In this document: positions 5,174-53,502 of the stretch, piece after piece
Layout: every line of letters starts with the position of its first letter
Numbering within the stretch: the stretch's first letter is position 1
Source: Haliotis cracherodii
Taxonomy: Eukaryota
DNA length: 64,000 bases
Direction of reading: 5' to 3'
NCBI RefSeq assembly: GCF_022045235.1
Contig: NW_027266330.1
Coordinates: 31,744,001 to 31,808,000 of the forward strand
The notes under the pieces: model-generated
What the model was told of the DNA's origin: nothing
Database searches by the model: none
The model's input: only the letters and a program-made list of their open reading frames with translations
Program-made: the position numbers and the translations under genes

Positions 5174-5795
5174 ATGGATCCAGTTCAAGTTGCCATCAAG
5201 CTGAGACGACTCCTTATTGCCCACGACAATGCAGTGAAAGAGATCCTGACATTAGGTAAATATGAACTGTGCTCTTTTTCAGTCCCCTGCAAGCATTGCA
5301 ATATCGGTATCACACTGAATTTTAGAATTGAACAAAATAAAATGATATTGTTGTGAACACATTTACCGAGATTTCTAATTACCCGTTTTATTGTTTTCAG
5401 ATACCCAAGTCTACTATCTGATGCGGAAGATGACAGCCAACTCCTCCAACAACTGCATAATCCGAGGTGAACAGCTGATCCAGAGACGATGGGTGCTGGA
5501 AGGTGTCAAGGAGATGTTTACCATCTACAGACAACTCAAGTGGCAAGAGGTGCAAGCCTGTGTAAACGCCATCACCAAAGATGCTTCTGGAGAGAGTGAT
5601 TCGGAGGCGGACGGGAATGCAGATACCTCTTTCAATGACGATGAAGCTTCCTTCACGGAACTCCTGTCCGACAGCTCATATAGTGAGGACGACGAAGACC
5701 AGGGAGACCTATACAGCAACGACAGCAGCTACGATATGACGACTCTCAGTCGAGCTTTGTCTGTAGACGACAGTGCACTTCATAGAAACGCCTAA
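5174..5795 (+). CDS. Array gene copy 3 join(5174..5255,5401..5795), G99 allele
   Basis: Same signals as copy 1, ORF intact. Confidence 0.8.
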
Positions 5796-6035
5796 GGGAA
5801 ATCACAAGTCCCATCCACATCAACTAGTGCTGCATTTACCTTGTTATTCATTTTTTGTTATTGTACACAAATGTTGCCTGACAGTGTGCAAAGGGCATCC
5901 TATTATATTGTAAACCACATTTGTTTGTTGATGAATATGCTGAGGAAATAAATAATGAAGTCGATATTATAATCTTGATCATTTGCTGACACGCTCACGA
6001 CATCTTGAAGACATCATTCGCATAGAAAGTTTGTG

Positions 6036-6078
<43 letters not shown>

Positions 6079-7734
6079 TAATTTGAGATGGTATCTCACA
6101 ATACCAAGCCTTCCATCATTTTACTTGGTTCTGAGTATGGCAATCATTCGAAGATATCGTCCTTAATCTATTCTTTGAAATAGGAAAAGATACAGACTAA
6201 TCAATTGAAATGAAACACATTAGGTATTGATGGAGAAGAAGAGATTCCAAGGTAATGGTTGCACCATAACATTAAATACAGTTTGGAGCGTTGCAATTCG
6301 TTTGCCCGTATCCATGCCGATCCTATAGCAAAAGGATTTAGACAGACGAACCACAACCCCATATGATATTCATCTGAGAGAGATATATGCCAGGTTGTAT
6401 TTCATATTATCAGAGCATTTAATTGTTTCTCTTTCTTTTTGCAATGTACATGCCCAAGTGCTTAAGGAGAGAGTCATGCATGTTAAAAAGTGTCAATGCA
6501 CACAACATGCAAAACAAAAGGAAATTGAAACATTGACATCAACACAGGCCAAATAACATTTTTGATCCAAGTCAGCACTTGATGAATACTATTCCCCTGA
6601 AAGCACTAAAAAGTAAAGATCAGAATATCCTGACATGAAACAGTGGGATTCTTTCAAAAACAATGCTAACAACGTGCTTATGTTTATCTAGCAACATACT
6701 CCAATTTCCATCATGTGCTTTAACAGCATTCTGTATTCAAAGATATAAATCATGACACAGTGCTTTGTAATTCTCCCCAAAACATGACAGTTATACACTG
6801 AAGATGATGTCTCTAGATCATTTAACACACATAAACTTTATTGTACATGCCTATTTATTTATATAGTAACCTTTTAAGTACCCGACGTCCACCCAAAAGC
6901 TTCTAAGATGGTAAATATCCAGATACTTAAGCCAAATGAGCTGCTTCAATTATACCATGATGATGGTATTCATCAAAAATAGTATTTGAAATGCTTCAAA
7001 ACATACGTGCTGTATTTCGATCATGTAAGACGGGTTGGGAAAATGCTCAGATTAACATAGCATTTACGACCTCCAACAGATGTGTACAATAAGTTCCAGA
7101 TTTGACTGTACATGTATTCACTTTGCCTTTGCCTACCTGATTAAGGATTTTTTAGGATTGTGGACATGGTTTTCTCGGCTTTTTTAATTGAAACTAAACG
7201 TTCAGAGAAGCATGCATCAGACGATTTCCAAGCTGATAGAAGTTTCTGTGACTTGGTTTCTGTGGAAGCGAAAGTAACCACATCGGATTTTTAAGTAATA
7301 CAATGTACTGCACCGTTTGATCAATCCCGATTTAATCAATTAACAATGATTGATAATCCCTGGAGATAACAGGACTAGATTGGTTGAACTCTTCTCAGAC
7401 CTGTCCCTTTATACGGAAACTTGTTTTGACAAGAAGTTGATTGGTTTCTCAAGTGGACAGTGAGATTCCTTTCGGATCAAAGCCGAATGAAGTTGCAGTG
7501 TAGCTTTGATCTCGCCACTGGCTTCGAAAATGCTCTCTTTGATCTATAAATCTCTACTACTATGTTTATACTAAGGGTAAGTATAAATGTTTTGCAAGGA
7601 CTGGAGTCCTTCACTGCATCTCAATCCGTGAGAACGAACACATCTACTTTCCAATTATCTAAATTTGGCGCTACTGAATTCCTGTAGTATTACATCCGAC
7701 TGCATTCTAGTGTTGTGTCCGAAGGCCCTAGAAA

Positions 7735-13477: not shown

Positions 13478-15271
13478 GGGAAATCACAAGTCCCATCCAC
13501 ATCAACTAGTGCTGCATTTACCTTGTTATTCATTTTTTGTTATTGTACACAAATGTTGCCTGACAGTGTGCAAAGGGCATCCTATTATATTGTAAACCAC
13601 ATTTGTTTGTTGATGAATATGCTGAGGAAATAAATAATGAAGTCGATATTATAATCTTGATCATTTGCTGACACGCTCACGACATCTTGAAGACATCATT
13701 CGCATAGAAAGTTTGTGAGAGACAGAGAGAGAGAGAGAGAGAAAAGGTTAATTTGAGATGGTATCTCACAATACCAAGCCTTCCATCATTTTACTTGGTT
13801 CTGAGTATGGCAATCATTCGAAGATATCGTCCTTAATCTATTCTTTGAAATAGGAAAAGATACAGACTAATCAATTGAAATGAAACACATTAGGTATTGA
13901 TGGAGAAGAAGAGATTCCAAGGTAATGGTTGCACCATAACATTAAATACAGTTTGGAGCGTTGCAATTCGTTTGCCCGTATCCATGCCGATCCTATAGCA
14001 AAAGGATTTAGACAGACGAACCACAACCCCATATGATATTCATCTGAGAGGATATATGCCAGGTTGTATTTCATATTATCAGAGCATTTAATTGTTTCTC
14101 TTTCTTTTTGCAATGTACATGCCCAAGTGCTTAAGGAGAGAGTCATGCATGTTAAAAAGTGTCAATGCACACAGCATGCAAAACAAAAGGAAATTGAAAC
14201 ATTGACATCAACACAGGCCAAATAACATTTTTGATCCAAGTCAGCACTTGATGAATACTATTCCCCTGAAAGCACTAAAAAGTAAAGATCAGAATATCCT
14301 GACATGAAACAGTGGGCATCTTTCAAAAACAATGCTAACAACGTGCTTATGTTTATCTAGCAACATACTCCAATTTCCATCATGTGCTTTAACAGCATTC
14401 TGTATTCAAAGATATAAATCATGACACAGTGCTTTGTAATTCTCCCCAAAACATGACAGTTATACACTGAAGATGATGTCTCTAGATCATTTAACACACA
14501 TAAACTTTATTGTACATGCCTATTTATTTATATAGTAACCTTTTAAGTACCCGACGTCCACCCAAAAGCTTCTAAGATGGTAAATATCCAGATACTTAAG
14601 CCAAATGAGCTGCTTCAATTATACCATGATGATGGTATTCATCAAAAATAGTATTTGAAATGCTTCAAAACATACGTGCTGTATTTCGATCATGTAAGAC
14701 GGGTTGGGAAAATGCTCAGATTAACATAGCATTTACGACCTCCAACAGATGTGTACAATAAGTTCCAGATTTGACTGTACATGTATTCACTTTGCCTTTG
14801 CCTACCTGATTAAGGATTTTTTAGGATTGTGGACATGGTTTTCTCGGCTTTTTTAATTGAAACTAAACGTTCAGAGAAGCATGCATCAGACGATTTCCAA
14901 GCTGATAGAAGTTTCTGTGACTTGGTTTCTGTGGAAGCGAAAGTAACCACATCGGATTTTTAAGTAATACAATGTACTGCACCGTTTGATCAATCCCGAT
15001 TTAATCAATTAACAATGATTGATAATCCCTGGAGATAACAGGACTAGATTGGTTGAACTCTTCTCAGACCTGTCCCTTTATACGGAAACTTGTTTTGACA
15101 AGAAGTTGATTGGTTTCTCAAGTGGACAGTGAGATTCCTTTCGGATCAAAGCCGAATGAAGTTGCAGTGTAGCTTTGATCTCGCCACTGGCTTCGAAAAT
15201 GCTCTCTTTGATCTATAAATCTCTACTACTATGTTTATACTAAGGGTAAGTATAAATGTTTTGCAAGGACT

Positions 15272-16186
15272 ACAAGCCCTCCAAAACAAAAATACCAAAA
15301 ACCGACCTAAATTAATAAATCAAATACTTAAAAGCTCCAACGACCTAACAAAAGCAGGCAAACAAATAACCTTCTTGTGGATACCCGCCCACGTAGGAAT
15401 ATACGGTAATGAAAACGCCGATAAAGCAGCTAAACTATCCCTTAAAATCCCAGAAATAAGCTTAAACTTACCCATCTCAAAATCAGAAATTAAAAGTGTA
15501 AACAAACAAAAAATCACAAAAAAATGGCATAACCTATATCTAAACTCAAATAGCAAAATCAAAAGAGTGCTCAGCAAACCACTAACCAAACCAAAAATTC
15601 TCCATCCATCAAAAAAAATCGACAGAGTAATCACTAAACTCCAAACAGGACACACCAACCTAAATAACCACCTAAAAAAAATTAAAAAACACACTACAGG
15701 TAACTGCCCACACTGCAAACAACCAGAAACCCCAGAACACGCACTCATCCACTGCACACACTACCTAACACATCGAACCGCATTACAAACCACCCTCAAT
15801 CTAAACAAGGCTCTCACTCTAGAAGCAATACTAAACCCACAAAATAAACTAGAAAACTTCAAGGCCTTAGGCGTATTCTTAATAAAAACGGAACTAATAA
15901 AACGCATCTAAAACCATAATAACCTACCAAATCAAAATCACATAAACAAACAATCATCCACCATACCCAGCTCCCTTAGTTCTCCTCCCCAACCCCATCA
16001 GCATCTATTCCAAATCTCAAAATTCCCAAATTCTATATAAGCAACCCCTAAAGCCCCCTCTTGGGTTGCACAGACCACCCTCGCCCCTTTCGGAAACACA
16101 TTAAATGGCCTGGCCGGGCCCGTGTGCGAAATACGCATCAGTCGGAAAGCGCACGTTAAATCTCCAAAGTAAGTAAGTAAGTAAGT
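15272..16186 (+). mobile_element. 5'-truncated non-LTR retrotransposon (I group, Nimb-like), insertion 1
   Basis: Encodes the end of RNase H (WIPAHVGIYGNENADKAAK) and a CCHC finger (CPHCKQPETPEHALIHC), stop at 15911. 3' UTR and (AAGT)5 tail at 16167-16186. 5' junction via GGACT microhomology; no TSD beyond at most one T. Confidence 0.93.
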
Positions 16187-16318
16187 GGAGTCCTTCACTG
16201 CATCTCAATCCGTGAGAACGAACACATCTACTTTCCAATTATCTAAATTTGGCGCTACTGAATTCCTGTAGTATTACATCCGACTGCATTCTAGTGTTGT
16301 GTCCGAAGGCCCTAGAAA

Positions 16319-16940
16319 ATGGATCCAGTTCAAGTTGCCATCAAGCTGAGACGACTCCTTATTGCCCACGACAATGCAGTGAAAGAGATCCTGACATTAG
16401 GTAAATATGAACTGTGCTCTTTTTCAGTCCCCTGCAAGCATTGCAATATCGGTATCACACTGAATTTTAGAATTGAACAAAATAAAATGATATTGTTGTG
16501 AACACATTTACCGAGATTTCTAATTACCCGTTTTATTGTTTTCAGATACCCAAGTCTACTATCTGATGCGGAAGATGACAGCCAACTCCTCCAACAACTG
16601 CATAATCCGAGGTGAACAGCTGATCCAGAGACGATGGGTGCTGGAAGGTGTCAAGGAGATGTTTACCATCTACAGACAACTCAAGTGGCAAGAGGTGCAA
16701 GCCTGTGTAAACGCCATCACCAAAGATGCTTCTGGAGAGAGTGATTCGGAGGCGGACTGGAATGCAGATACCTCTTTCAATGACGATGAAGCTTCCTTCA
16801 CGGAACTCCTGTCCGACAGCTCATATAGTGAGGACGACGAAGACCAGGGAGACCTATACAGCAACGACAGCAGCTACGATATGACGACTCTCAGTCGAGC
16901 TTTGTCTGTAGACGACAGTGCACTTCATAGAAACGCCTAA
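16319..16940 (+). CDS. Array gene copy 7 join(16319..16400,16546..16940), W99 allele; upstream region interrupted by LINE insertion 1
   Basis: ORF intact; 915-bp LINE fragment ends 132 bp upstream of the ATG. Confidence 0.75.
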
Positions 16941-17180
16941 GGGAAATCACAAGTCCCATCCACATCAACTAGTGCTGCATTTACCTTGTTATTCATTTTT
17001 TGTTATTGTACACAAATGTTGCCTGACAGTGTGCAAAGGGCATCCTATTATATTGTAAACCACATTTGTTTGTTGATGAATATGCTGAGGAAATAAATAA
17101 TGAAGTCGATATTATAATCTTGATCATTTGCTGACACGCTCACGACATCTTGAAGACATCATTCGCATAGAAAGTTTGTG

Positions 17181-17223
<43 letters not shown>

Positions 17224-18768
17224 TAATTTGAGATGGTATCTCACAATACCAAGCCTTCCATCATTTTACTTGGTTCTGAGTATGGCAATCATTCGAAGAT
17301 ATCGTCCTTAATCTATTCTTTGAAATAGGAAAAGATACAGACTAATCAATTGAAATGAAACACATTAGGTATTGATGGAGAAGAAGAGATTCCAAGGTAA
17401 TGGTTGCACCATAACATTAAATACAGTTTGGAGCGTTGCAATTCGTTTGCCCGTATCCATGCCGATCCTATAGCAAAAGGATTTAGACAGACGAACCACA
17501 ACCCCATATGATATTCATCTGAGAGAGATATATGCCAGGTTGTATTTCATATTATCAGAGCATTTAATTGTTTCTCTTTCTTTTTGCAATGTACATGCCC
17601 AAGTGCTTAAGGAGAGAGTCATGCATGTTAAAAAGTGTCAATGCACACAACATGCAAAACAAAAGGAAATTGAAACATTGACATCAACACAGGCCAAATA
17701 ACATTTTTGATCCAAGTCAGCACTTGATGAATACTATTCCCCTGAAAGCACTAAAAAGTAAAGATCAGAATATCCTGACATGAAACAGTGGGATTCTTTC
17801 AAAAACAATGCTAACAACGTGCTTATGTTTATCTAGCAACATACTCCAATTTCCATCATGTGCTTTAACAGCATTCTGTATTCAAAGATATAAATCATGA
17901 CACAGTGCTTTGTAATTCTCCCCAAAACATGACAGTTATACACTGAAGATGATGTCTCTAGATCATTTAACACACATAAACTTCATTGTACATGCCTATT
18001 TATTTATATAGTAACCTTTTAAGTACCCGACGTCCACCCAAAAGCTTCTAAGATGGTAAATATCCAGATACTTAAGCCAAATGAGCTGCTTCAATTATAC
18101 CATGATGATGGTATTCATCAAAAATAGTATTTGAAATGCTTCAAAACATACGTGCTGTATTTCGATCATGTAAGACGGGTTGGGAAAATGCTCAGATTAA
18201 CATAGCATTTACGACCTCCAACAGATGTGTACAATAAGTTCCAGATTTGACTGTACATGTATTCACTTTGCCTTTGCCTACCTGATTAAGGATTTTTTAG
18301 GATTGTGGACATGGTTTTCTCGGCTTTTTTAATTGAAACTAAACGTTCAGAGAAGCATGCATCAGACGATTTCCAAGCTGATAGAAGTTTCTGTGACTTG
18401 GTTTCTGTGGAAGCGAAAGTAACCACATCGGATTTTTAAGTAATACAATGTACTGCACCGTTTGATCAATCCCGATTTAATCAATTAACAATGATTGATA
18501 ATCCCTGGAGATAACAGGACTAGATTGGTTGAACTCTTCTCAGACCTGTCCCTTTATACGGAAACTTGTTTTGACAAGAAGTTGATCGGTTTCTCAAGTG
18601 GACAGTGAGATTCCTTTCGGATCAAAGCCGAATGAAGTTGCAGTGTAGCTTTGATCTCGCCACTGGCTTCGAAAATGCTCTCTTTGATCTATAAATCTCT
18701 ACTACTATGTTTATACTAAGGGTAAGTATAAATGTTTTGCAAGGACTGGAGTCCTTCACTGCATCTCA

Positions 18769-20764
18769 TACTTACTTACTTTGGAGATTTAACGTGCGCT
18801 TTCCGACTGACGCGTATTTCGCACACGGGCCCGGCCAGGCCATTTAATGTGTTTCCGAAAGGGGCGAGGGTGGTCTGTGCAACCCAAGAGGGGGCTTTAG
18901 GGGTTGCTTATATAGAATTTGGGAATTTTGAGATTTGGAATAGATGCCGATGGGGTTGGGGAGGAGAACTAAGGGAGCTGGGTATGGTGGATGATTGTTT
19001 GTTTTTGTGATTTTGATTTGGTAGGTTATCATGGTTTTAGATGCGTTTTATTAGTTCCGTTTTTATTAAGAATACGCCTAAGGCCTTGAAGTTTTCTAGT
19101 TTATTTTGTGGGTTTAGTATTGCTTCTAGAGTGAGAGCCTTGTTTAGATTGAGGGTGGTTTGTAATGCGGTTCGATGTGTTAGGTAGTGTGTGCAGTGGA
19201 TGAGTGCGTGTTCTGGGGTTTCTGGTTGTTTGCAGTGTGGGCAGTTACCTGTAGTGTGTTTTTTAATTTTTTTTAGGTGGTTATTTAGGTTGGTGTGTCC
19301 TGTTTGGAGTTTAGTGATTACTCTGTCGATTTTTTTGGATGGATGGAGAATTTTTGGTTTGGTTAGTGGTTTGCTGAGCACTCTTTTGATTTGGCTATTT
19401 GAGTTTAGATATAGGTTATGCCATTTTTTTGTGATTTTTTGTTTGTTTACACTTTTAATTTCTGATTTTGAGATGGGTAAGTTTAAGCTTATTTCTGGGA
19501 TTTTGAGGGATAGTTTAGCTGCTTTATCGGCGTTTTCATTACCGTATATTCCTACGTGGGCGGGTATCCACAAGAAGGTTATTTGTTTGCCTGCTTTTGT
19601 TAGGTCGTTGGAGCTTTTTAGTATTTGATTTATTAATTTAGGTCGGTTTTTGGTATTTTTGTTTTGGAGGGCTTGTAGTCCACTTAGGGAGTCAGTAAGT
19701 ATTAGGATTTTTTGGTTGTTTTTGGATTCTTGATTGTGGAGGGCTGAGGCCATGCCCATTAGTTCGGCCGTGAATATTGATTGGTTATTTGGGAGTCGGA
19801 AGGATTGTGTGGTTTTAGTTGGTTGTGTGGTATGGACTCCGAAACCCGTGTGTTTGGAGGTCGGATCTGAGGATCCGTCCGTGTAAATGTGACACCAATT
19901 TGGCCAATTTTTGTGTATGTATGCTAGTGTGGTAGTTTTAGCTATGTTTGGGTCGGTTTGTTTATTTATTTGGCTAGCTAGTGTTGTGTCTATTTTGGGT
20001 ATTTTAAGTTTAGGGGTGAAGATATTTGATTGTTTGCAGTTTTGTTTAAGATTTTTAATTTGGTGTTCATTTAGGTAGTTTGTTATTCTTTGGGATATTG
20101 GGGTAAGTAAGGGGTGTTTACGAGCTAGAGCTTGGTTTTTAGGGCTGATGTTTTGGTTTATTAAGTTTTGGATGAGAGGGTTTGATTGGGACGCGGCCCA
20201 GAAATTTAAGCTTAGCTGTTCCCTGCGTAGACTTAGTGGCATTTCTCCTGTTAAGGCCTGAAGTGAGGTGTAGGAGGTGCCATGTTGGGTGCGTGTAATG
20301 AGTTTGAGAGCCTGATATTGTATTGAGTCAAGTTTTTTAGATAGAGAGTTGTTTAGGGTGTTGTATATGGCGCAGCCGTAGTCTAGTTTTGATCTAATTA
20401 GGGATATGTAGAGAGAGAGGAGAGTATCTTTGGAGGATCCCCAGTTAGAGCCAGTTAGGCATCTTAGGGTGTTTAGGTCTTTACTGCATTTAGTTGTTAG
20501 GTTTTGGATGTGAGCATCCCAGGTGAGATGTTCATCGAAAATAAGTCCTAAGAATTTGGTTTGTTTTTGAAATTTGATTGTTTGATTGTTTAGCTGGAGG
20601 ATTGGGGAGGCGGGTTTCATGTTTTTATGTTTGAATACTATTCCTGTTGTTTTTTCTGAGTTAAGGGAGAAGCCCCATTTGTCAGCCCATTGTTGTATTT
20701 TATTAAGAGATTTTTGGAGTAGATTTTTGGCCATTTTCATGCTAAGTAAGTAAGTAAGTAAGTA
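18769..20764 (-). mobile_element. 5'-truncated non-LTR retrotransposon of the same family, insertion 2, antisense, 22-bp TSD
   Basis: TSD TGGAGTCCTTCACTGCATCTCA at 18747-18768 and 20765-20786. Minus-strand tail TACTTACTTACT at 18769-18780 and an extra plus-strand (TAAG)n run at 20743-20764. Confidence 0.95.
19037..20740 (-). pseudogene. Truncated LINE ORF2: C-terminal part of RT, RNase H, CCHC zinc finger (567 aa open)
   Basis: QWADKWGF..KFLGLIFD (distal RT/thumb), IRSKLDYG, RNase H motifs IYTDGS, FTAEL, TDSLS, WIPAHVGIYGNENAD, then CX2CX7HX4C. Begins downstream of the YADD motif, so it is not a full protein. Confidence 0.92.
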
Positions 20765-20897
20765 TGGAGTCCTTCACTGCATCTCAATCCGTGAGAACGA
20801 ACACATCTACTTTCCAATTATCTAAATTTGGCGCTACTGAATTCCTGTAGTATTACATCCGACTGCATTCTAGTGTTGTGTCCGAAGGCCCTAGAAA

Positions 20898-21519
20898 ATG
20901 GATCCAGTTCAAGTTGCCATCAAGCTGAGACGACTCCTTATTGCCCACGACAATGCAGTGAAAGAGATCCTGACATTAGGTAAATATGAACTGTGCTCTT
21001 TTTCAGTCCCCTGCAAGCATTGCAATATCAGTATCACACTGAATTTTAGAATTGAACAAAATAAAATGATATTGTTGTGAACACATTTACCGAGATTTCT
21101 AATTACCCGTTTTATTGTTTTCAGATACCCAAGTCTACTATCTGATGCGGAAGATGACAGCCAACTCCTCCAACAACTGCATAATCCGAGGTGAACAGCT
21201 GATCCAGAGACGATGGGTGCTGGAAGGTGTCAAGGAGATGTTTACCATCTACAGACAACTCAAGTGGCAAGAGGTGCAAGCCTGTGTAAACGCCATCACC
21301 AAAGATGCTTCTGGAGAGAGTGATTCGGAGGCGGACGGGAATGCAGATACCTCTTTCAATGACGATGAAGCTTCCTTCACGGAACTCTTGTCCGACAGCT
21401 CATATAGTGAGGACGACGAAGACCAGGGAGACCTATACAGCAACGACAGCAGCTACGATATGACGACTCTCAGTCGAGCTTTGTCTGTAGACGACAGTGC
21501 ACTTCATAGAAACGCCTAA
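20898..21519 (+). CDS. Array gene copy 8 join(20898..20979,21125..21519), G99 allele; upstream region interrupted by LINE insertion 2
   Basis: ORF intact; one synonymous CTG>TTG change. Confidence 0.75.
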
Positions 21520-28980: not shown

Positions 28981-31900
28981 TTAGAAGAGGAAGGCGGTGA
29001 CTTTACACATGCAGCAGAGAGCCATCAACACGAAGACACCGACGACTACCACTAGGACGAAGCCTGTGAAGTTCATCATGTCGGTCATGGGCGTCTTCCG
29101 CACCAACTCCTCTGCCCCGCTCCACGCGTGGGGACCCTGGAGACGCCACTGGGAGGCACCGCATGAACTGAACAACAACCTACAAAGATGAGGAAACACT
29201 GTTACCACGTTTACATAAATAACGAGAGGATATTTGTCTTTCGTCCTAAGGTAATGCATATCTCATCAAATGATCTTCCATCTCTTCCACTTATCTGGGG
29301 GCTGTAATTAAAGCCTTATCATACTGGGTCAGTTTTTGTTGTTTTACGCCGCACTCAGCAATATTCCAGCTTTATGATGGCCGTCTGCCAATAATCGAGT
29401 CTGGACCAGACAATCCAGTGATTGACATCATGAGCATCAATCCACACAATTGGGATACGATGACATGCATCAACCAAGTCAGCGAGCCTGACCACCCGAT
29501 CCCGTTAGTTGCCTCTTATGACAAGCATAGCCGCCTTTTATGGCAAGAGTGGGTTCCTGAAGACTTATTCTACCCTGGGTTTTCACGAGTGAGAGAGTGT
29601 GGTTTTATGCCCCATGTTGCAATATTCCAGCAATATCATGGCGGGGGATACCAGAAATGGGCCTCACACATTGTACCAATGTGGGGAATCAAACCCAGGT
29701 CTTCACCATGACAAGTGAATGCTTTAACCACTAGGCTACCCCACTGCCCTTATCATGCTGAAGGTTGGACTCCACAAGGCAGAGTGCACTCACTCACTTG
29801 CTAATCTGGACCCTACCCAGTCTAGCCACCCAACATTCTCACTCACTCATTATTTACACTAAGATACCGCAATTCGCAGAAACCTATGATAGTGGATTCG
29901 AATCCCGGTTCACCCCGATTATGTTTCGAGGTTTGTCAGTACCACACCCATGCTTGTGGGTTGCAACAAAGTGGGAAACGTCAAAGTAGGAGACGGGCTT
30001 TCCTCCCATAGGCCATGGCATGTCATGGCATCAACTGAAATGCTGTTAAAAATGTTGTTAAACCCAACTCACTCACCGACAACTCACTCACTCACAGACT
30101 CAGCCAGCACTCCCACTCCACGCACCACGCACAACCACTTTCACTTACTCACTCACTCACTCACGCAGCACTCTCACTCACTCACCCACCACTCTCACTC
30201 ACTCACTCACTCACTCACCCACCACTCTCACTCACTCACTCACTCACCCACCACTCTCACTCACTCACTCACCCTCCACTCTCACTCACTCACCCTCCAC
30301 TCTCACTCACTCACCCTCCACTCTCACTCACTCTCCCACCACTCTCACTCACTCACCCTCCACTCTCACTCACTCACCCACCACTCTCACTCACTCACCC
30401 TCCACTCTCACTCACTCACCCTCCACTCTCACTCACTCTCCCACCACTCTCACTCACTCACCCACCACTCTCACTCACTCACCCTCCACTCTCACTCACT
30501 CTCCCACCACTCTCACTCACTCACCCACCACTCTCACTCACTCACCCACCACTCTCACTCACTCACCCTCCACTCTCACTCACTCACCCACCACTCTCAC
30601 TCACTCACCCTCCACTCTCACTCACTCACCCTCCACTCTCACTCACTCACCCACCACTCTCACTCACTCACCCACCACTCTCACTCACTCTCCCAACACT
30701 CTCACTCACTCACCCACCACTCTCACTCACTCACCCACCACTCTCACTCACTCACTCACTCACTCACTCACCCACCACTCTCACTCACTCACCCTCCACT
30801 CTCACTCACTCACCCTCCACTCTCACTCACTCACCCTCCACTCCAACTCACTCACCCACCACTCTCACTCACTCACCCTCCACTCTCACTCACTCACCCA
30901 CCACTCTCACTCACTCGCCCACCACTCTCACTCACTCACCCACCACTCTCACTCACTCACCCTCCACTCTCACTCACTCACCCACCACTCTCACTCACTC
31001 GCCCACCACTCTCACTCACTCACCCACCACTCTCACTCACTCACCCTCCACTCTCACTCACTCACCCACCACTCTCACTCACTCACCCACCACTCTCACT
31101 CACTCAACCACTAATCTCACACAACCACTCACACTCAGCACTCACTCACTTACCCACCACTCACTCACCCTCCACTCCAACTCACTCACCCACCACTCTC
31201 ACTCACTCACCCTCCACTCTCACTCACTCGCCCACCACTCTCACTCACTCGCCCACCACTCTCACTCACTCACCCACCACTCTCAGTCACTCACCCTCCA
31301 CTCTCACTCACTCACCCTCCACTCTCACTCACTCACCCACCACTCTCACTCACTCACCCACCACTCTCAGTCACTCACCCACCACTCTCACTCACTCACC
31401 CACCACTCTCACTCACTCACCCTCCACTCTCACTCACTCGCCCACCACTCTCACTCACTCACCCTCCACTCTCACTCACTCACCCACCACTCTCACTCAC
31501 TCACCCACCACTCTCACTCACTCACCCACCACTCTCACTCACTCACCCACCACTCTCACTCACTCGCCCACCACTCTCACTCACTCACCCACCACTCTCA
31601 CTCACTCACCCACCACTCTCACTCACTCACCCTCCACTCTCACTCACTCGCCCACCACTCTCACTCACTCACCCACCACTCTCACTCACTCACCCACCAC
31701 TCTCACTCACTCACCCACCACTCTCACTCACTCACCCTCCACTCTCACTCACTCGCCCACCACTCTCACTCACTCACCCACCACTCTCACTCACTCGCCC
31801 ACCACTCTCACTCACTCACCCACCACTCTCACTCACTCACCCTCCACTCTCACTCACTCGCCCACCACTCTCACTCACTCACCCACCACTCTCACTCACT

Positions 31901-34900
31901 CACCCACCACTCTCACTCACTCACCCACCACTCTCACTCACTCACCCACCACTCTCACTCACTCACCACTCTCACTCACTCACCCTCCACTCTCACTCAC
32001 TCACCACTCTCACTCACTCGCCCACCACTCTCACTCACTCACCCACCACTCTCACTCACTCACTCACTCGCCCACCACTCTCACTCACTCACCCACCACT
32101 CTCACTCACTCACCCACCACTCTCACTCACTCACTCACTCGCCCTCCACTCTCACTCACTCGCCCACCACTCTCACTCACTCACCACTCTCACTCACTCA
32201 CCCACCACTCTCACTCACTCACCCACCACTCTCAGTCACTCACCCTCCACTCTCACTGACTCACCCACCACTCTCACTCACTCACCCACCACTCTCACTC
32301 ACTCACCCTCCACTCTCACTCACTCACCCACCACTCTCACTCACTCGCCCACCACTCTCAGTCACTCACCCACCACTCTCACTCACTCACCCTCCACTCT
32401 CACTCACTCACCCACCACTCTCACTCACTCGCCCACCACTCTCAGTCACTCACCCACCACTCTCACTCACTCACCCTCCACTCTCACTCACTCACCCTCC
32501 ACTCTCACTCACTCACCCACCACTCTCACTCACTCGCCCACCACTCTCACTCACTCAACCACCACTCTCACTCACTCACCCTCCACTCTCACTCACTCAC
32601 CCTCCACTCTCACTCACTCACCCACCACTCTCACTCACTCGCCCACCACTCTCACTCACTCAACCACTAATCTCACACAACCACTCACACTCAGCACTCA
32701 CTCACTTACCCACCACTCACTCACCCACCACTCTCACTCACTCAACCACTAATCTCACTCACTCACTCACTCACTACTAACCTCCATGCAAGGAGTGGGT
32801 GCCTCCATATTTCTGGCTTGGCCCCGAAGAAGGAGGCCACCTCATCGTTGTAGAGTATAGGGTCCTTCTGGATGGTGTGTCGCGCCGTCTTGTACCATCT
32901 CTCAGAATATATCCTCTGAAACACAGACCATGTCAGAAGTCAGAGATCCACCTCGTGAAGCAGGACATATATCTCTTCTGAGTTCTCAAGAACTTTCAGG
33001 GGGCACGGGTGGCCCAGTCGTCTATGATGTCGTGAGTTGCGTCCCATGCGCACGCCAGAAACCTATGATTGTGGGTTTGAATCCCGGTTTGCCCTGATTA
33101 TGTTTCTAGCACCATACCCGTGCTCGTGGGTTTCACCGAAGTAATAAATATCTGAAACCTGCATCCCTTCGGGCTTTCCTCCCATATTAAGCCAACTGGA
33201 ATACTGTTAAAAGAGGCTTTAAACCCAACTCACTCACTCAAGAACATTCCAAACCTTTTCTCTGGTGATGTCTTGCTCCATCTGAAAGTTGGAGGGCAGC
33301 TTGACCCGCCCCTTGATCACCTCGGAGAACCAGCGAGCTTGTGTCTCGGACATCGTCAGCACCCCACCAGAAGCCGGTTGGACAAAGCCGATGAAAGCCA
33401 GGGACTTGCCGATATCGGGGCTGAACACGTTCTTGAACAACTGAAACGGACGAAAGTATGGTTACTCAAACATATCAAATTAATGAGCAACTTGTTTACA
33501 TGAAGGGAGAGACAGGATTCTGGTAACAACGACAAATGTATTCAAACTTTATAAAGCTGCTGTGGGTACTGGCTTAACTTTTGTGTTGCAATTTATGGTT
33601 CATGTATTGCAATCTTTCATCTGTAAGTTGGTATAAACATGAATAGGAAAACGTTCCCCTCACAATTTTGACAACTTCATAATTGTCTGGATTCGTGTTA
33701 AATCATGACTTCAAAAATTTAGAAAACAACTCCCACAAATAATGTGGTGAACATTTTTTAAATTGAAAATGGAAATATAAATGAAACGTGGCAGACTTTA
33801 TGATGATGCGGACAGTCCCTGAGAACCAAGACAATTATTTTTCTAAGCCTTATCTCGAACCTAGCAGAAGCGAGTAAACCGTATTATTTGCAAGGCTACG
33901 GCTACGTAAACCCTGCAGAAGCAAAGAGTTTACCTTCAATTCGTTGCTGTTGTCAACGACGACCTTGTCCTTCACACTGTCAGGGAGGTACGGCAGGTCG
34001 ATGCTGTAGCCCGTGCAGTACAGGATCTTGTCAAACTCCGCAGACTCCCCATTCACAAAATACACTTTCTCGCCTTCAATTCTCTAAAATGTGAAATTAG
34101 AAATATGAAAATGACAGATATTTGTTACTGCAACAAAACTTTTGAAATGTTACTCTCTGGTGAAACTGAATTTTCTGTTTGTATGTGCGTTGTGTAACAC
34201 CTCATTCAGCAATGTTGCAGCTAAATGACAGCGGCCTGTAAATAATCAGGTCTAGACCAGACAATGCTGTGAATGATACTGTGAGAAACGATTCATGCCA
34301 TCAACCAAGTCACCGAGTCTGACCACCAGATCCATGTTGCCTACTTCAACCAGCACAGGGTATCAGCACAAGCTATCAGTGACAACATGATAGAGTTTTG
34401 TTTGTTTTTTAACACCATTTTTAGTAAAAGTGCAGCTATGTGACAACTGCCCCAAAATAATCTTGGTTTGTTTGTTAGTTGTTTAATGCCACACTCACAA
34501 ATATTCCAGCTATATGATGGCAGTACACTTGTCTGCTAGCCATCTCCTACCAGTATATTTGGCACGACGGTGATCTCCTTCCTCTGTATGTGGTGGACAA
34601 GGGTAGGGCTCACTGTCGGCTGGGTCTGCATGGCTCTCATCTTCGGGTTTAGGTTCCACCTGGAATATACACACGAGATGAGGGATTCATCACTGTTTTA
34701 CTATACAGTCATACTTCAACAATGAAGACAGCATTGGCATGGATTTCTTTCAGTTAGGGGATAAAAATACTGTATTCTTGTACTAGCTACCTTAAGACAT
34801 AAATGGTGAAATGGAATTTGGAACTTACTGACAATGACTGGGAATATATTCTTCAGCGACCATCACAGTCCGTGACTTTAGCCACTAGTTCATAACCCGA

Positions 34901-36828: not shown

Positions 36829-36874
<46 letters not shown>

Positions 36875-39800: not shown

Positions 39801-42800
39801 GCCAATCTAGGGTTCAGATTCTCTTTTGGTCAGCTTGGGTTTTGGTACTGGAGTGTTTTGGAGATGGTCCTCTTGACTAGCTTGGTAGAATACTCGGTGA
39901 GGTTGGTGAATACATGCCGCAGATGTATAAGTTCATGGTCAAGGTCAAGACCTTTAACTTGAGACCCCAGCAACAAGATCAAAACCACAAAGCCTACCTA
40001 TTCTGACCAGTACATTTACTTCATCTCTAACCGTCTCCCTAAAACTAAGTCTGGCATCATCTCCACACTGACCAAGAGATCCAAGAACATCTGCTCCAGC
40101 AAGCTTGACCTTGATCAGAAACTGAAAACATCTTCAGCACGTCTTCACGAATCTCAACCAGTACCCCACCAAGCTAGTTAAGAGGCCCATCTCCACCACA
40201 CTCCATTCCAAACCTAAACCAACCAGACCAGAATCCACCCCCATCACAATCACCCTACCGTTCATTGGCAAAGCCTCTCATCAAGCAGCAGAGTACGAAA
40301 GCACCATGTTGGCATCGACACCATCTTCACTGGCTCCCCATCCCTTAGAACCATCCTCCAAGTTAATATCCTCTTCAACCAGAGGCCCCCCAAAGGAGTT
40401 ATCTATAGGATTAACTGTGACTGTGGTGATTCATACATTGATGATACTTCCCGCCTTGTATCCAAAAACCCAAACAACAAAGTCCAAACAACAAAGTCCA
40501 AACAACAAAGTCCAAACCACCGTGTACAGGACACCACCAATTCTGACCAGTATATTTACTTCACCTCTAACCACCAACCAAAAACTAAGCCTGGCATCAT
40601 CTCCACACTGACGACCTTGCCCTTGACCAGATCATCCGCAGTAGGTATTCACCAACCTGAACCAGTATCACTTCCCTGGCGTATTGCGGCATTACACAAG
40701 CACTCACTCACACACTGGGCCATACCTTTCTTTTCCATAGACAAGACCTTCGTATTAAACTGGATGTTGTCTTCCAGCTTGAAATGGGTGGTGTAGTCGG
40801 CGATGTACTTGGCCATGTCGATGTTGTGGGGGTAGTCTGGGACATCGTCGGGGAAGGGGAAGTCAGAGAAGCTGTAGTTGTACTTGGACACATTGCTGCA
40901 ACAAGAACACTACAGGTGTTAGGAATGTTAGCTGGGACGTCATCGGGGAGGGGGAGGTCAGAGAAGCTGTAGTTGTACTTGGAGACATTGCTGCAACAAG
41001 AACACTACCAGTGTCAAGCATGTTAGCTGGGACATCGACCCAGATGGGAGACTCAACTACAGCAGGGCGTGGAGTCATCCCACAGATGACATCCTAACCG
41101 TGTCAGCTTGCTCACAGGGTTAACCTCTGTGGTCATGTGGTCATGTGGACAAGGTATCCAACCTCGGATCAGATGGTCTGTGATTCGAATCCCATCACAG
41201 GACTCGGAAATTTTATGGCCGCTACACTACCAGTATGAAAGATGTCGGCTGGGACATTTGTCAAACAAGAAACCTCCTCCACTGTTCGAACGATTATTTG
41301 AGACATTGCTCAAACAAGGAGAAACCATCACCATCTTTTTTGGAACATATTAACTTTGTGAGTATTTTGGGAAATTTAGTTAAAGTTATCCCTGAAAACA
41401 TTTTTTGGTTATTTTTTCTATTTTCTTCCATGAATTCGTCAAGCATTATCAGCATGCAGAGAACAAACACCTGCTACATTGTGCTGGGCACCACTCCACA
41501 AAGTGATCTTAGTGAGAGTGAGTGAGTTGAGTTTTATCGCCACTTTTAACAGTATTCCAGTTATATCGCGACATGTGGGAGTTTAATGTGGGAGGAAAAC
41601 CCGAAGTGATGCAGGTCTCAGACATTTACCACTTTGGTGAAACCCATGAGCATGGGTATGGTGCTGACAAACCTAGAAACATAATCGAGGCGAACTGGGA
41701 TTCAAACCCACAATCATAGGTTTCTGGCATGCCCAAGGGACGCGACTCTGGACAGCAAATCGCGGCGCCTTAGACAACTGGGCCACCTGTGCCCCCGATC
41801 TTAGTGAGAACACTGAACTGTGCTAAGACGGCTTAATTGAATGATGGGGATAACTCTCTTTACAGTAACCGTTATAAAGATACCACTTTTGTTCTCTTTA
41901 TAAGGTCCTTGTGGTATCTTAGCATTTCATCAGTCATCCTTTTAAGAAAGTAACCATGGTAACAGGAGCATTTTGGTTGCACTTTCTTGTGTCTTTCTAC
42001 TTTTCTGGATGTTCAGCAGATGGACAATTGAAACATACATAAATAACTCAGACTTTATTTCATGATGGTGTCTTTTCAATCAAGTTGGTAGATTTGTAAA
42101 TGGAAATGTTAACAAAATGTCATCATAGGGTCCTGAAGAACTAGCCTAACCTAGGTCCCAGTGGAGTAGAGTGAGTGAGTGTGTGTGTATGGTTTTACGC
42201 CGCTTTTAGCAATATTCCAGCAATATCACGGCGGGGGACACCAGAAATGGGCTTCACACATTGTACCCATGTTGGGAATCGAACCCGGGTCTTCGGCGTG
42301 ACGAGCGAATGCTTTAACCACTAGGCTACCCAACCGCGCCCCCCAATGGAGTAGAAATGTCAGGTAAGAAGAGGATGAGTGTCATAAAATATGTGCATAC
42401 AAGTTGTCAACTATTCTCAAGGGGTATATAGTGTGAAGAACCCTGTGTGGGAGTCCCTGAGGGTTTGGTTGAAGACAAATTTACATAACCGACACTCATT
42501 CATACAGGTGAGGAATTTATATCCGCAGTTTTACCGAATTAGCAATATTCATAGCAGACGACGCAAACGAACTGAGTTACTTCCCTTTTCTCAAATGCAT
42601 TCAGATCAACTTCTGTTTATTTCAGACTCAACGATACTTATGCGAGATAAGCAAGTTAGATGTGTTACGATTGATTTTTCAGCGGACTACATTGAAAACG
42701 AGAATCATCAGGAGATGACATATCCTCCCGGTCTGGTGCAATTCAGAAACAGAGTTTGAGTACTTATGCCTCACTTTCGGTTCATTGCCATTGGATACCT

Positions 42801-48800: not shown

Positions 48801-51800
48801 GAAACAATAATACAAACTGGTTTGATAGAATGTAGGCATTTTGGGATGTAGGCTCAATCCCAGAGGAGACGTGCTAATCCCAAATTGAGACAATTAGAAA
48901 CAGCTGGGTACTTGGTGTCTAAACTTTGAGACAGACNNNNNNNNNNNNNNNNNNNNNNNNNNNNNNNNNNNNNNNNNNNNNNNNNNNNNNNNNNNNNNNN
49001 NNNNNNNNNNNNNNNNNNNNNNNNNNNNNNNNNNNNNNNNNNNNNNNNNNNNNNNNNNNNNNNNNNNNNNNNNNNNNNNNNNNNAGTTTATGTAAGTCTC
49101 ATCCCAAATACATTAAAAAATGGGGATGAAGATGGAAAACAGGCGGGCCACTCTATACAGAGTTGGAGGAGACTAAGATGGGTAAAATATACATGCTTAT
49201 ATTCTATGTCCACACTTAAAATATATATATTATAAGCAATTAATACACATTTCTAATTCTTATTATATCAAAAATGACAATGAAGGACTGACTTTCTCTG
49301 TTTGAAAATAGCACAACAGGTTTAAGCCGTTACACTAAAATAGTCACATCATGATGAAATAAAACAAACCTTTGGAATATTTTTTTGACCATTTATAAGA
49401 ATATCTGGGGTAATTGGCGTCTAAACTGTGAAATTTTCTTACAAAAATTAGAAATCATTCTTAGCATGGTTTGGTTTTCATGAAAAACGTCTTCTGCATC
49501 CATTTTGTTACTCAAACTCCAATCACAAGCCAAAACAAGCGATGGCTCGAAAGACTAATGTGTCCACAACAGACATACAAAACTAACGATGCTGTTTAAA
49601 TACTTATTGGGTAAAAGAATGTTACAAACTGCTGTATCAGAGCTTCAGATATGCTGTGTATTTGCGTAAAATACCCCCCAAAAATATTCAAAACCCAATT
49701 ACTTTCAATTATCTTGCATACAGAAACGTGTGCATTTATTGACTTTCCGAGTCAAACCTTTAGTTAGAACCCTTATATACATCTCAAACATATTATTTAT
49801 TTTTTTGAAATCTCAAAATGTTTACTAATTTTGGGGTTCAAAGTACAATTTGATTGTGTTCAAGGTAGTGAAGTACATATCAATATGTTCCTTTATGTTC
49901 CCAAGATACATAGAAGTTATTAGGTGTCAGTTTTCATATGATTCCCTATATCAACCCTCGACCCCGGTATCAGTCTTCTGACCTTCGGCCTTCGCCCCTG
50001 GGGCTGATATGGGGGTCGAGGGTTGATATGTAAATATAAAATATAAAAATTGTAAAATGTACTATTTGCAAGTGAATGCAAGACATTTTCACCTTGTTTG
50101 GAAGTCATTGTCACAGGAAAGCTAGCTGAGCAGACAAGCAGGCGACGCACTAAGTGATGTAACTCTTAATTTTTTTTACCACCTAGGCTGATGTCAATCA
50201 TCCATTCAAAACACATTGACAAGACACATGAGCCCGGCAGGGGATGTAATACAGGTCTGGTTATTACACCCCTGTGGTATGACCTTCTCCATGTTGGCTC
50301 TATCGCATATGCAAAATGCCTCATAACATTGACAGGTATACAGTGTTCCCGCTTGCTTTTGAAACAGCCAGTCCTTGTGGACTGGCAACTCTAAAAATTA
50401 CCAGTCCCCCCGAATTTTTGCCAGTCCCAACTTTCAAAAAAAAAAAACACATATGAAAATTATTTGGTTTTAATTCTTTCAACATAATCTTCAGTGCAAA
50501 GATGTCATGTCTGAAGTAACTTAGTTAGATCTATATGTCATTCACACAAACTTCAGTCACAATTTTCTCTTCTTTTTTTAATATTTCGAGACAAGGTCGC
50601 TACAAATGGATATTTAACCAGAAATAGACAAGAGGAAACCCTGATGGTAATAGACATGCTGACTTTGTTAAAAAAATGTACTTTTATGAATATCCCTGAA
50701 GTTTTGTACAACAATAAAGAATTATAAAGTACTTTATTTGCCGGTCCACAGGGAGTAATTTTACCGGTAAAAAACTGGTAGTGACTGGTAAACCGGAACA
50801 CTGGTATATGACAAATATTGATTTTACCCTGGTACAGAACACCCTATGCGCATCACTGGACACTGTGATGAAACGAACCAGTCAAATAATCCAGCCCTCT
50901 CACTCTACCGTCCCTCCATATATGCCTCGGATATTTTTTCGAGCCAGTGAGTATTGACTCGCTTGTAATAATCTCATTGTACACAACATATTTTTCTCCA
51001 AGCCGACCAGTTCTTGTTTAAGCCCCTTAATGTCGAGCACCAGGCAGGGTAACAACAAGTACCAACAGAATTAAATTCTGGAAAAATATATCTGTCGTAT
51101 ATAAACATTTCAGGCTGTCAGCATAAACCACGAAATTTATCCTTCACAAAAAAAATATTCTAATAAGAGCCCCCTATTTCTAATTTTGAGAGCGCCCTAG
51201 GCGCTTATTACATTGAATACGGTATTTACAGACCGCCATCATATAGCTGGAATATTGCTGAGTCCGGCGTTAAACAACAAACAAAACAAAAACACAACCT
51301 TGACACAAGTGCTCGTTTGCAAAAACTCAAAACTAATCATATTTGCAATTTAATGCTGATTCACAGCTTATCTGTAGCCCCTAAAAAGTGAGTGAGTGAG
51401 TGAGTTGGATTTAACGCCGCTTTTAACAGTATTCCAGTTATATCACGGCGTGTCAGCTTCAAGTGGGACTCTGGAAAGCTCGAAGTGGTGCAGGCCCCAG
51501 ACGTTTACCACTTTGGTAAAACCCACGAGCACGGGTATGATGCCGACAAACCTAGAAACATAATCGGGGCGAACCGGGATTTGAACCCACAATCATAGGT
51601 TTCTGGTGTCCCCAAGGGACGCAACTCTGCACAGCGAATCGCATTCTTCATGACTATGAATGCATTCCTTATGACATATATGTTTGAATAAAGATAAAAC
51701 TTCTGTCAACTTGAGTGTATATGCATCACCAGATCGTTTTATACACTTTGCTCGGGCTACTGTTAAACTATTCCCAATCGGACATTTTGTACCCATCTCT

Positions 51801-53346: not shown

Positions 53347-53502
53347 NNNNNNNNNNNNNNNNNNNNNNNNNNNNNNNNNNNNNNNNNNNNNNNNNNNNNN
53401 NNNNNNNNNNNNNNNNNNNNNNNNNNNNNNNNNNNNNNNNNNNNNNNNNNNNNNNNNNNNNNNNNNNNNNNNNNNNNNNNNNNNNNNNNNNNNNNNNNNN
53501 NN
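53347..53502. other. Assembly gap
   Basis: Run of N. Confidence 1.

Follow-up and report, generated by a model that had tools for sequence, protein, structure and literature searches.

A LINE retrotransposon that apparently inserts just downstream of TATA boxes and recurrently hits one nucleotide of a tandem gene array in Haliotis cracherodii

A young and abundant LINE retrotransposon of Haliotis cracherodii has been inserted at least eight separate times at the same nucleotide of a gene array of about 60 copies. This is apparently because the family inserts about 21 bases downstream of TATA boxes, in the orientation of the TATA, all over the genome, and not because it recognises the array or its palindrome. 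The analysis started from a window of 64,000 nucleotides (assembly GCF_022045235.1, contig NW_027266330.1, positions 31,744,001 to 31,808,000 of the forward strand). In this window, a first-pass annotation had pointed out two LINE insertions at the same position of adjacent array units, each with an (AAGT)n tail abutting the centre of a palindrome. That observation is confirmed and is stronger than originally described. The interpretation given with it, a site-specific element using the array as its niche in the way R2 uses rDNA, is only partly supported: the events are independent and the site is a true recurrent target, but specificity for the palindrome or the array is not supported.

Recurrent insertions in the array

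The array occupies positions 1-22676 (plus strand) of the window and continues upstream of it, spanning 31606785-31766676 of the same contig (C67); it runs about 157 kb, with about 60 units of 2.56 kb. It was delimited by the (GA)n periodicity found with TRF and by blastn of one unit against 208 kb, and all of 54 candidate units lie on C67. Each unit carries a predicted TATA plus Inr promoter and a two-exon ORF. In the unit downstream of the first insertion, exon 1 lies at 16319-16400, a GT..AG intron at 16401-16545 and exon 2 at 16546-16940 (plus strand), encoding an acidic orphan protein of 158 amino acids whose ATG is 132 nt downstream of the nick. A contig of one sequencing run (X18) joins 16398 to 16544, indicating a spliced product, and the ORF is intact in 46 of 47 units. 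No Pfam family matched the protein and no relative was found in the Atlas (exon 2 by reference only); the joined two-exon protein was translated only to check that it is intact and was not itself used in any search. The TATA box of the unit promoter (TATAAAT) lies at 18727-18733 (plus strand) in the unit carrying the second insertion, at 15251-15257 in the unit carrying the first, and once per unit elsewhere. Its first T is 21 nt before the nick and 31 nt before the predicted Inr A at 18758.

The two insertions in the window, G and H, are the only copies of this LINE there. G (15272-16186, plus strand) is a 5'-truncated copy of 915 bp, equal to element positions 5424-6338, comprising the end of the RNase H region, a C-terminal CCHC motif and the 3' UTR. 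Its (AAGT)5 tail at 16167-16186 abuts GGAGTCC at 16186/16187. G has no TSD, and its 5' junction sits in a 5-nt GGACT microhomology (15267-15271). H (18769-20764) consists of an inverted body of 1,975 bp (18769-20743, minus strand; element positions 6330-4357) with its own tail, read as (ACTT)3 at 18770-18781, and a separate direct (AAGT)5A tail at 20744-20764 (plus strand). The whole is flanked by an exact 22-nt TSD at 18747-18768 and 20765-20786 (both plus strand). An ORF at 19037-20740 carries the C-terminal end of RT and RNase H. The inverted part is read as primed from the top-strand nick 22 nt downstream of the first nick, and the direct part as a tail-only cDNA primed from the bottom-strand nick at the usual site, in a double-tailed, twin-primed event; the same architecture occurs in a dispersed copy (L003). 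As in L1 twin priming (inversion with 5' truncation), both target nicks primed reverse transcription and an inverted segment lies inside one TSD pair. In H and L003, however, the second priming also began at the 3' tail of the RNA, so that the insertion carries two tails in opposite orientations instead of an internally primed inversion. G and H differ at 8 of 908 aligned bases, in agreement with the first-pass annotation.

Six more insertions of the family (A, B, D, E, F1 and F2) lie at the same nucleotide in the part of the array upstream of the window. The first-strand (bottom-strand) nick used by all eight insertions, within 1 nt, is at 18747/18748 in the unit of H, at 15271/15272 in that of G, and at 2480/2481, 5041/5042 and so on in empty units; it falls between -11 and -10 of the predicted core promoter, and the shared junction reads ACT^GGAGTCC. 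The TSDs are of about 12, 7, 7, 10, 10, 0 and 22 nt, and truncation points and tail lengths differ. The array copies do not form one clade: F1 and H share seven diagnostic sites, D is 91% identical to E, and E, A, B, F2 and G sit among the dispersed copies. At least three sublineages are represented, one of them only 91% identical to the rest. For these counts a majority call at variable alignment columns was used only to count differences, and no consensus element was built. Chance is excluded: about 1,630 copies in 1.18 Gb predict about 0.2 copies in 157 kb, whereas eight are seen, all at one phosphodiester bond (within 1 nt). Raw-read support for the two junctions in the window, which had been named in advance as a possible ground for rejection, was not settled, because the raw-read run was sampled at about 1% and the other runs are short contigs; no decisive junction-spanning reads and no RNA starts were obtained, so that the transcription start of the unit gene was not mapped. 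A single ancestral insertion copied by unequal crossing-over and later remodelled is very unlikely: tandem arrays do duplicate units and the 3' junction is identical in most copies, but the TSD lengths (12, 10, 7, 0 and 22 nt) cannot be derived from one another by deletion, the truncation points all differ, D is 9% diverged while its flanking units differ from the reference unit by 2-6%, and F1 and H belong to a different sublineage from E, A, B, F2 and G.

The element is an APE-type LINE with an (AAGT)n tail; a single-motif copy is 6.3 kb and the longer form is about 6.57 kb. ORF2 matches the Pfam families Exo_endo_phos (16-224), RVT_1 (509-760) and RNase_H (977-1103), as in the RNase H-bearing APE LINEs of the I group (I, Nimb, Ingi, Tad1, LOA, R1), and a CCHC motif follows RNase H. 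In the translation of ORF1, three Cys/His knuckle-like motifs are visible but no Pfam family matches, which leaves it undecided whether they are the CCHC zinc knuckles of this group. The nearest named relatives are uncharacterised proteins of Haliotis and teleost fishes at 35-46% identity, which fits the known hosts of Nimb but is not a test of that assignment, since no RT-domain phylogeny with Nimb reference elements was made.

A TATA box upstream of the nick

The criterion that the first-pass annotation had set for abandoning its own reading, namely unrelated 3' flanks in most copies, is fulfilled. A 30-nt motif of the 3' end has 1,628 exact matches in the genome, which therefore has at least 1,628 copies of the 3' end. 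The 3' flanks of 30 retrieved copies and a further 100 listed flanks are unrelated to the array and show no enrichment of TGGAGTCC. The junction of the tail and GGAGTCCTTCAC occurs only inside the array, at seven sites. In an independent individual, reads run from the tail into many different sequences (loose ends at 16186, agreement 0.41). The palindrome itself is a 7-bp inverted repeat with a GG spacer (AAGGACT GG AGTCCTT), and the junction lies 1-2 nt 5' of its centre. In about half of the units, including those carrying inserts A and B, the arm is only 5 bp (ACGGACT), and other targets have no palindrome.

What the targets share is a TATA box starting 20-22 nt upstream of the first-strand nick, in the orientation of the LINE. 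In ten empty sites reconstructed from TSDs, which share no sequence at the nick, the best TATA-like 8-mer within 60 nt lies at -20 to -22 in eight (binomial P about 3e-9). This set, which comprises all the sites with both junctions, includes insert C, an 83%-related LINE on the opposite strand of the array. A search for TATAWA followed by a gap of 10-40 nt and the LINE 5' end gave 107 matches (72 distinct sites), whereas a gap of 41-71 nt gave 21, most of them a second TATA of one repeat family, a difference of about five times. Of the 72 spacings, 54 fall in 9 of the 31 possible lengths (P about 1e-15), which equals 21 nt plus a TSD of 5-13 nt plus CAGTT. This spacing test on full-length copies leaves the TSD length free and is therefore indirect. 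Dispersed junctions were taken from the matched strings of pattern searches, some of them counted by eye. Strict TATAWA in that range is carried by about 19 of 50 evaluable 5' junctions, against about 5% expected from base composition; by eye, about two thirds carry a TATA-like heptamer, and about one third show no convincing TATA-like motif at the right distance. Several recurrent targets are copies of a few repeat families, so that the events are independent but the target sequences are not. As for orientation, 27 distinct forward TATAAA sites were found against 11 matches for inverted TTTATA, ten of which are a LINE tail or overlap a forward TATA, leaving at most one independent inverted site. 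All eight array events have the plus-oriented tail at the site.

The motif alone is not enough. The unit has 4-5 TATAWAW motifs, but all eight hits use the one placed 31 nt before an Inr-like TCA(+1)CTG and upstream of the ORF. Occupancy there is 8 of about 60, against an estimated 0.04% or so for an average TATAWAW motif. A nick-site consensus that the array would match was also sought; the only signal is C as the first base after the tail in 49 of 93 dispersed copies (counted by eye), a weak preference that the array, with G or T, does not match. Base pairing between the RNA tail and the nicked target is rejected, since the bottom-strand 3' end (…GGACTCC) is not complementary to (AAGU)n and the only match, a 5-nt TGGAG, is on the wrong strand. 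Homing through read-through RNA carrying array flank (3' transduction) is likewise rejected, because no copy outside the array carries the tail plus GGAGTCCTTCAC and the array copies come from several sublineages. Head-to-tail stacks with TSD spacers, like F1/F2 in the array, recur elsewhere in the genome (loci L016 and L021, and C1:45.76 Mb). Relatives from other species were not examined for this trait.

How the position might be set

The explanation that fits best, and that is held with fair confidence, is that the integration machinery places the first-strand nick 20-22 nt downstream of the first T of a TATA box, on the strand that puts the LINE in the TATA's own orientation. In this view, the array is a hotspot because every unit offers the same TATA (-31) plus Inr (+1) core promoter; the first nick would fall between -11 and -10 on the template strand, and the second 0-22 nt further on, giving the variable TSDs. 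As the TATA and the 21-nt spacer stay intact upstream of each insertion, the site could be hit again, giving head-to-tail stacks separated only by the TSD. The recurrent independent hits, the dispersal of the family and the spacing and orientation of the TATA are demonstrated by the present analysis. In contrast, it is an inference that a promoter-bound factor (TBP, the pre-initiation complex or the melted promoter edge) rather than the bare motif positions the nick; whether TBP, the pre-initiation complex or direct DNA reading sets the position is untested, no protein-DNA or protein-TBP evidence exists, interaction of an element protein with TBP or TFIIIB was not assayed, and no complex was predicted. 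It is likewise inferred that the usual TSD of 8-12 nt puts the LINE's own CA(+1)GTT start about 30-34 nt from the captured TATA, so that each sense insertion would rebuild a TATA plus Inr promoter for itself.

Direct reading of the TATA sequence by a DNA-binding surface of ORF1p or ORF2p, with no host factor, is a variant of this explanation that is possible but less likely. The spacing is sharp (within 1 nt) and orientation-specific, and targets include TATA motifs inside repeats that need not be active promoters. On the other hand, identical TATAAAT heptamers at two other places in the unit were never used (0 of 8), average TATAWAW motifs in the genome are used an estimated 300 times less often than that of the array, and no DNA-binding domain was found in ORF1p or ORF2p beyond APE and the CCHC motifs. 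It is rather unlikely that a pre-existing break or persistently open point, for example a transcription-associated nick, is patched by LINE cDNA without being chosen by the element, an alternative that the first-pass annotation had raised as a fragile or open site. It is close in spirit because the site is a promoter, lying at the upstream edge of where a TATA promoter melts; G has no TSD and a microhomology junction, and only one of the unit's TATA motifs is used. However, six of the eight events have regular TSDs of 7-22 nt and intact tails, typical of two staggered endonuclease nicks, and the same 21-nt geometry and orientation recur at hundreds of unrelated TATA sites, including TATA motifs inside other transposons, pointing to ordinary endonuclease-driven TPRT. 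No other transposon family has used the site in 157 kb. Recognition of the palindrome by a niche specialist, with dispersed copies as off-target noise, is very unlikely in spite of eight precise hits by several sublineages in a multicopy tandem gene, because more than 99% of copies lie elsewhere with unrelated flanks.

Relation to other targeted elements and implications

Dictyostelium TRE5-A, an APE-type non-LTR element, integrates about 48 bp upstream of tRNA genes, and its position is likewise set at a fixed distance from a promoter complex rather than by the nicked sequence; its ORF1p interacts with TFIIIB subunits including TBP (PMC5911963). TRE5-A targets Pol III genes, needs TFIIIC/TFIIIB and inserts in the orientation opposite to the tRNA gene. 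In the present case, the landmark is a TATA box of a Pol II-type core promoter, in the array in front of a spliced protein-coding unit, or a TATA motif in unique DNA or inside another transposon, and the LINE lies 21 nt downstream of it in the same orientation. Yeast Ty3, an LTR retrotransposon, integrates with nucleotide precision at Pol III start sites via TFIIIB (TBP plus Brf1) (PMC5911963), but it uses an integrase, not TPRT, and targets only Pol III genes. R2, R1, Tx1 and Utopia-type elements also make recurrent precise insertions in a multicopy tandem gene, with head-to-tail reuse of the regenerated site (PMC4640811). Nearly all copies of those families sit in one target sequence recognised by their endonuclease or DNA-binding domains, whereas fewer than 1% of the present copies are in the array and the nicked sequence is not conserved among targets.

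Target choice by APE-type LINEs is usually put down to a short nick-site preference, such as TT/AAAA for L1, or to true sequence specificity, as in R1 and R2. No description of a TATA-directed non-LTR element was found in full-text literature searches, although absence from the library searched is not proof. A LINE positioned at a fixed distance and orientation from TATA boxes would be a third mode in animals and the Pol II counterpart of Ty3 and TRE5-A at Pol III genes. The natural array of about 60 target copies with eight graded outcomes is a directly testable system, in which moving the TATA should move the nick, and it also warns that recurrent same-site insertions in a repeat do not by themselves show sequence specificity. 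Tentatively, and somewhat less likely than not, this may be the first LINE whose integration is keyed to TATA boxes of Pol II-type promoters, nicking the template strand at about -10, the upstream edge of the region that melts in the open complex, probably by reading TBP or the pre-initiation complex, and inserting in sense orientation so that its own Inr-like 5' end (CA+1GTT) lands about 30-34 nt from the captured TATA. Every new copy would thereby acquire a complete TATA plus Inr promoter (promoter capture), and multicopy TATA genes and TATA-bearing transposons would become self-renewing landing pads. TATA-positioned insertion predicts promoter-disrupting mutations at TATA genes, and it would explain how a heavily 5'-truncating element can still be transcribed, namely by borrowing a TATA.

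Structure of the array and of its insertions

The first 22.7 kb of the window are the right-hand end of a tandem array of 2.56-kb units on contig C67, on which the window occupies 31744001-31808000. The array spans C67:31606785-31766676 with about 60 units, and it exists nowhere else in the 1.18-Gb assembly. Units in and next to the window are 99-100% identical to each other, while those further left fall to 97% and some to 94%, forming a gradient of homogenisation, and the left end has an inverted partial unit (31607345-31607528). Each unit carries GTATAAATG, and an Inr-like TCA(+1)CTG lies 31 nt after its first T, although the transcription start of the unit was not mapped. A two-exon ORF of 158 codons (16319-16940 in the window) begins 132 nt downstream of the insertion site. 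This ORF is intact in 46 of 47 complete units, and a contig of sequencing run X18 lacks the GT..AG intron, so the unit is transcribed and spliced in at least a related organism. The encoded orphan protein has an acidic, Ser/Asp-rich C-terminal half and shows no Pfam family and no relative in the Atlas, a search in which exon 2 alone was used and the joined two-exon model was not included. Its variant sites are 5 synonymous and 14 nonsynonymous, giving no clear sign of purifying selection. Runs X11-X19, labelled as three other organisms, hold 39-54% of the sampled words of window 15100-20900, and therefore the LINE, the array unit or both exist nearly unchanged in related species. Elsewhere in the window, a 2.6-kb minisatellite (30142-32775) has about 125 copies of a 21-bp unit (CTCACTCACTCACCCACCACT) with 89% matching, and small tandem repeats are found at 40837-41036 (95 bp x 2.1), 36829-36872 ((CGCA)11) and 40470-40517 (a 14-mer x 3.4); two masked N runs (48937-49084 and 53347-53502) were left out of consideration.

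The two LINE insertions that the first-pass annotation placed at the same position of adjacent units are present as described. Insertion G (window 15272-16186) is a 915-bp 3' fragment in plus orientation, of which the (AAGT)5 tail abuts GGAGTCC; it has no TSD, and its 5' junction lies in a GGACT microhomology. Insertion H (window 18769-20764) is composite, consisting of an inverted 1,975-bp fragment with its own tail and a direct tail-only (AAGT)5A piece at the usual site, with a 22-nt TSD flanking the whole (18747-20786 with both TSD copies). Both junctions are read from the assembly, without read-level confirmation. The arrangement of H, with an inverted tail at one end and a direct tail at the other inside one long TSD, is what results if both staggered nicks primed reverse transcription on an RNA 3' tail, and the same double-tailed build is found in a dispersed copy (locus L003, around positions 300-345). 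G and H differ at 8 of 908 bases.

A pattern search for the tail followed by the target found 7 junction sites, all in this array, and alignment of a unit to the 144 kb upstream of the window then brought the number of interruptions to nine. Insertion A is 4,381 bp with a TSD of about 12 nt, B is 5,798 bp with a TSD of about 7 nt, and D is 3,771 bp with a TSD of about 7 nt and only 91% identical to the rest. E (6,338 bp; L053:1465-7802, where L053 is its extracted locus) has both ORFs open and a TSD of about 10 nt. F (C67:31714387-31726007) comprises two stacked copies separated only by the 10-nt target: F2 is full length, whereas F1 is truncated at element position 1302, and its 5' junction comes with a loss of about 1 kb of unit. 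With G and H, these make eight insertions of the family at one phosphodiester bond (+/-1 nt). The ninth interruption, C (C67:31675050-31679674; locus L050), is an 83%-related LINE with a (TCAG)n-type tail, inserted on the other strand and at another place in the unit (minus orientation, unit position about 2345) with a TSD of about 10 nt. The eight events are independent, because the TSD lengths cannot be derived from each other, the truncation points all differ, and, at the 12 informative columns of the last 1.8 kb, F1 and H carry one haplotype and D another, while E, A, B, F2 and G sit among dispersed copies.

Dispersal of the family and the TATA motif near its targets

The first-pass annotation had read the element as a specialist for this array, and its interpretation is partly supported: the independence of the insertions is borne out, but not the specialisation. 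The 275-bp 3' UTR of G has at least 40 perfect copies on many contigs, and a 30-nt 3'-end motif occurs 1,628 times. The 3' flanks of 30 extracted copies and of 100 further listed copies are unrelated to the array, which is the outcome that the annotation had specified in advance as contradicting its reading. The only regularity in these flanks, as counted by eye, is C as the first base after the tail in 49 of 93 copies, which the array lacks.

Eight 5'-truncated dispersed copies among the extracted loci have clear TSDs, from which their empty sites can be rebuilt. The array site and insert C, read on its own strand, were added to these, so that only 10 sites have both junctions. The best TATA-like 8-mer within 60 nt upstream of the nick lies at -20 to -22 in 8 of the 10 sites, whereas by chance a 3-position window would hold it 5.5% of the time (P about 3e-9). 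Examples are the array TATAAATG at -21, the dispersed copies L014 TATAAATT at -22, L027 TATAAAAT at -22, L018 TATATAGA at -20 and L019 TATAAGGA at -21, and insert C TATAAAGG at -20, where C sits 20 nt downstream of a TATAAAG.

Pattern searches were then used for counting in the genome, and several of the counts were made by eye. TATAWA, a gap of 10-40 nt and the LINE 5' end (GCAGTTTGTACYCC) gave 107 matches, which are 72 distinct sites, and the matched lengths pile up at 45-53 nt (54 of 72; uniform expectation 29%; P about 1e-15). This length equals 21 nt to the nick, plus a TSD of 5-13 nt, plus the 5 nt CAGTT that precede the motif at the true 5' end. The same pattern with a gap of 41-71 nt gave 21 matches, about 15 of which are a second TATAAAC in one repeat family that also carries the proximal TATA. 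The inverted motif TTTATA at 10-40 nt gave 11 matches, of which five are the 3' end of C-type LINEs and five overlap a forward TATA, while the forward TATAAA has 27 distinct sites.

The 56 nt upstream of 100 occurrences of the 5' motif were also listed. About 36 of the occurrences are an internal second copy of the motif, 235 bp inside the longest elements. The true start is therefore CAGTTGCAGTTTGTACCCC, E begins at the second motif, and a 5' tandem duplication is part of the full-length element. Ten others are head-to-tail stacks behind another LINE tail. Of the 50 distinct remaining junctions, 19 have a strict TATAWA in range, against about 5% expected from composition, and about two thirds, as judged by eye, have a TATA-like heptamer that leaves a plausible TSD. 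Recurrent targets include TATA motifs of a few repeat families, hit many times with different TSDs at one point 19-21 nt after their own TATA motif, for example TATATATTCTGCACTATGT^CCCTCATTCA and TATATACTTGCTTACTGCA^CTCTGTAAATC (such sites include C1:44736871, C6:22461179, C23:35992402, C1:46264013 and C1:65458613), and these might be promoters of other transposons. The LINE's own 3' UTR contains TATATAAG (window 16034-16075), and other copies have inserted 21 nt after it (C67:6700891 and C67:6926735), so LINE-in-LINE insertion follows the same rule.

The element and comparable integration systems

ORF2 of the element (1,260 aa in E) has APE, RT and RNase H domains and a C-terminal CCHC motif. 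ORF1 (582 codons) shows three knuckle-like Cys/His motifs but no Pfam match. The nearest named relatives are uncharacterised proteins of abalones and teleost fishes at 35-46% identity, and the best hit overall reaches 54%. This fits the description 'I/Nimb-like' in the first-pass annotation, although the clade was not tested. That the host is probably a mollusc is likewise an inference. The closest mechanisms are those of TRE5-A and Ty3, which are positioned by TFIIIB (including TBP) at Pol III genes (PMC5911963). The present case differs in the landmark (a TATA of a Pol II-type promoter), the distance, the sense orientation and the host (an animal). Full-text literature searches found no TATA-directed LINE.

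Geometry of the target site and its inferred meaning

In the array, the first T of the TATA (window 18727) is at -31 of the predicted Inr A (window 18758). The nick, between 18747 and 18748 on the bottom or template strand, is therefore between -11 and -10, about 20 bp downstream of the TATA, where promoter melting starts in Pol II open complexes, a correspondence that was not tested in the array. The second nick lies 0-22 nt further on. As the insertion leaves the TATA and the 21-nt spacer intact, the same bond can be cut again, which accounts for F1 on F2 and for the stacks with TSD spacers in the dispersed loci L016 and L021 and at C1:45.76 Mb.

The motif alone is not sufficient. The unit has TATAAAT at two further plus-strand places and a TATATAAATA on the minus strand, none of which is used (0 of 8), and, by a rough estimate, the array's motif is occupied about 300 times more often than an average TATAWAW in the genome. 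The unused TATA motifs include those at unit positions 1704 and 2505. Positioning by something bound or opened at functional TATA boxes, such as TBP, the pre-initiation complex or the bubble edge, is favoured on these grounds over reading of the bare sequence. This step is inferred rather than observed, and so is a second one, concerning the promoter of the LINE itself. With the modal TSD of 8-12 nt, the A of the LINE's CAGTT start lies 28-35 nt (mostly 31-35) after the first T of the TATA, which is the canonical TATA to Inr distance, and a sense insertion would then rebuild a complete core promoter for the element.
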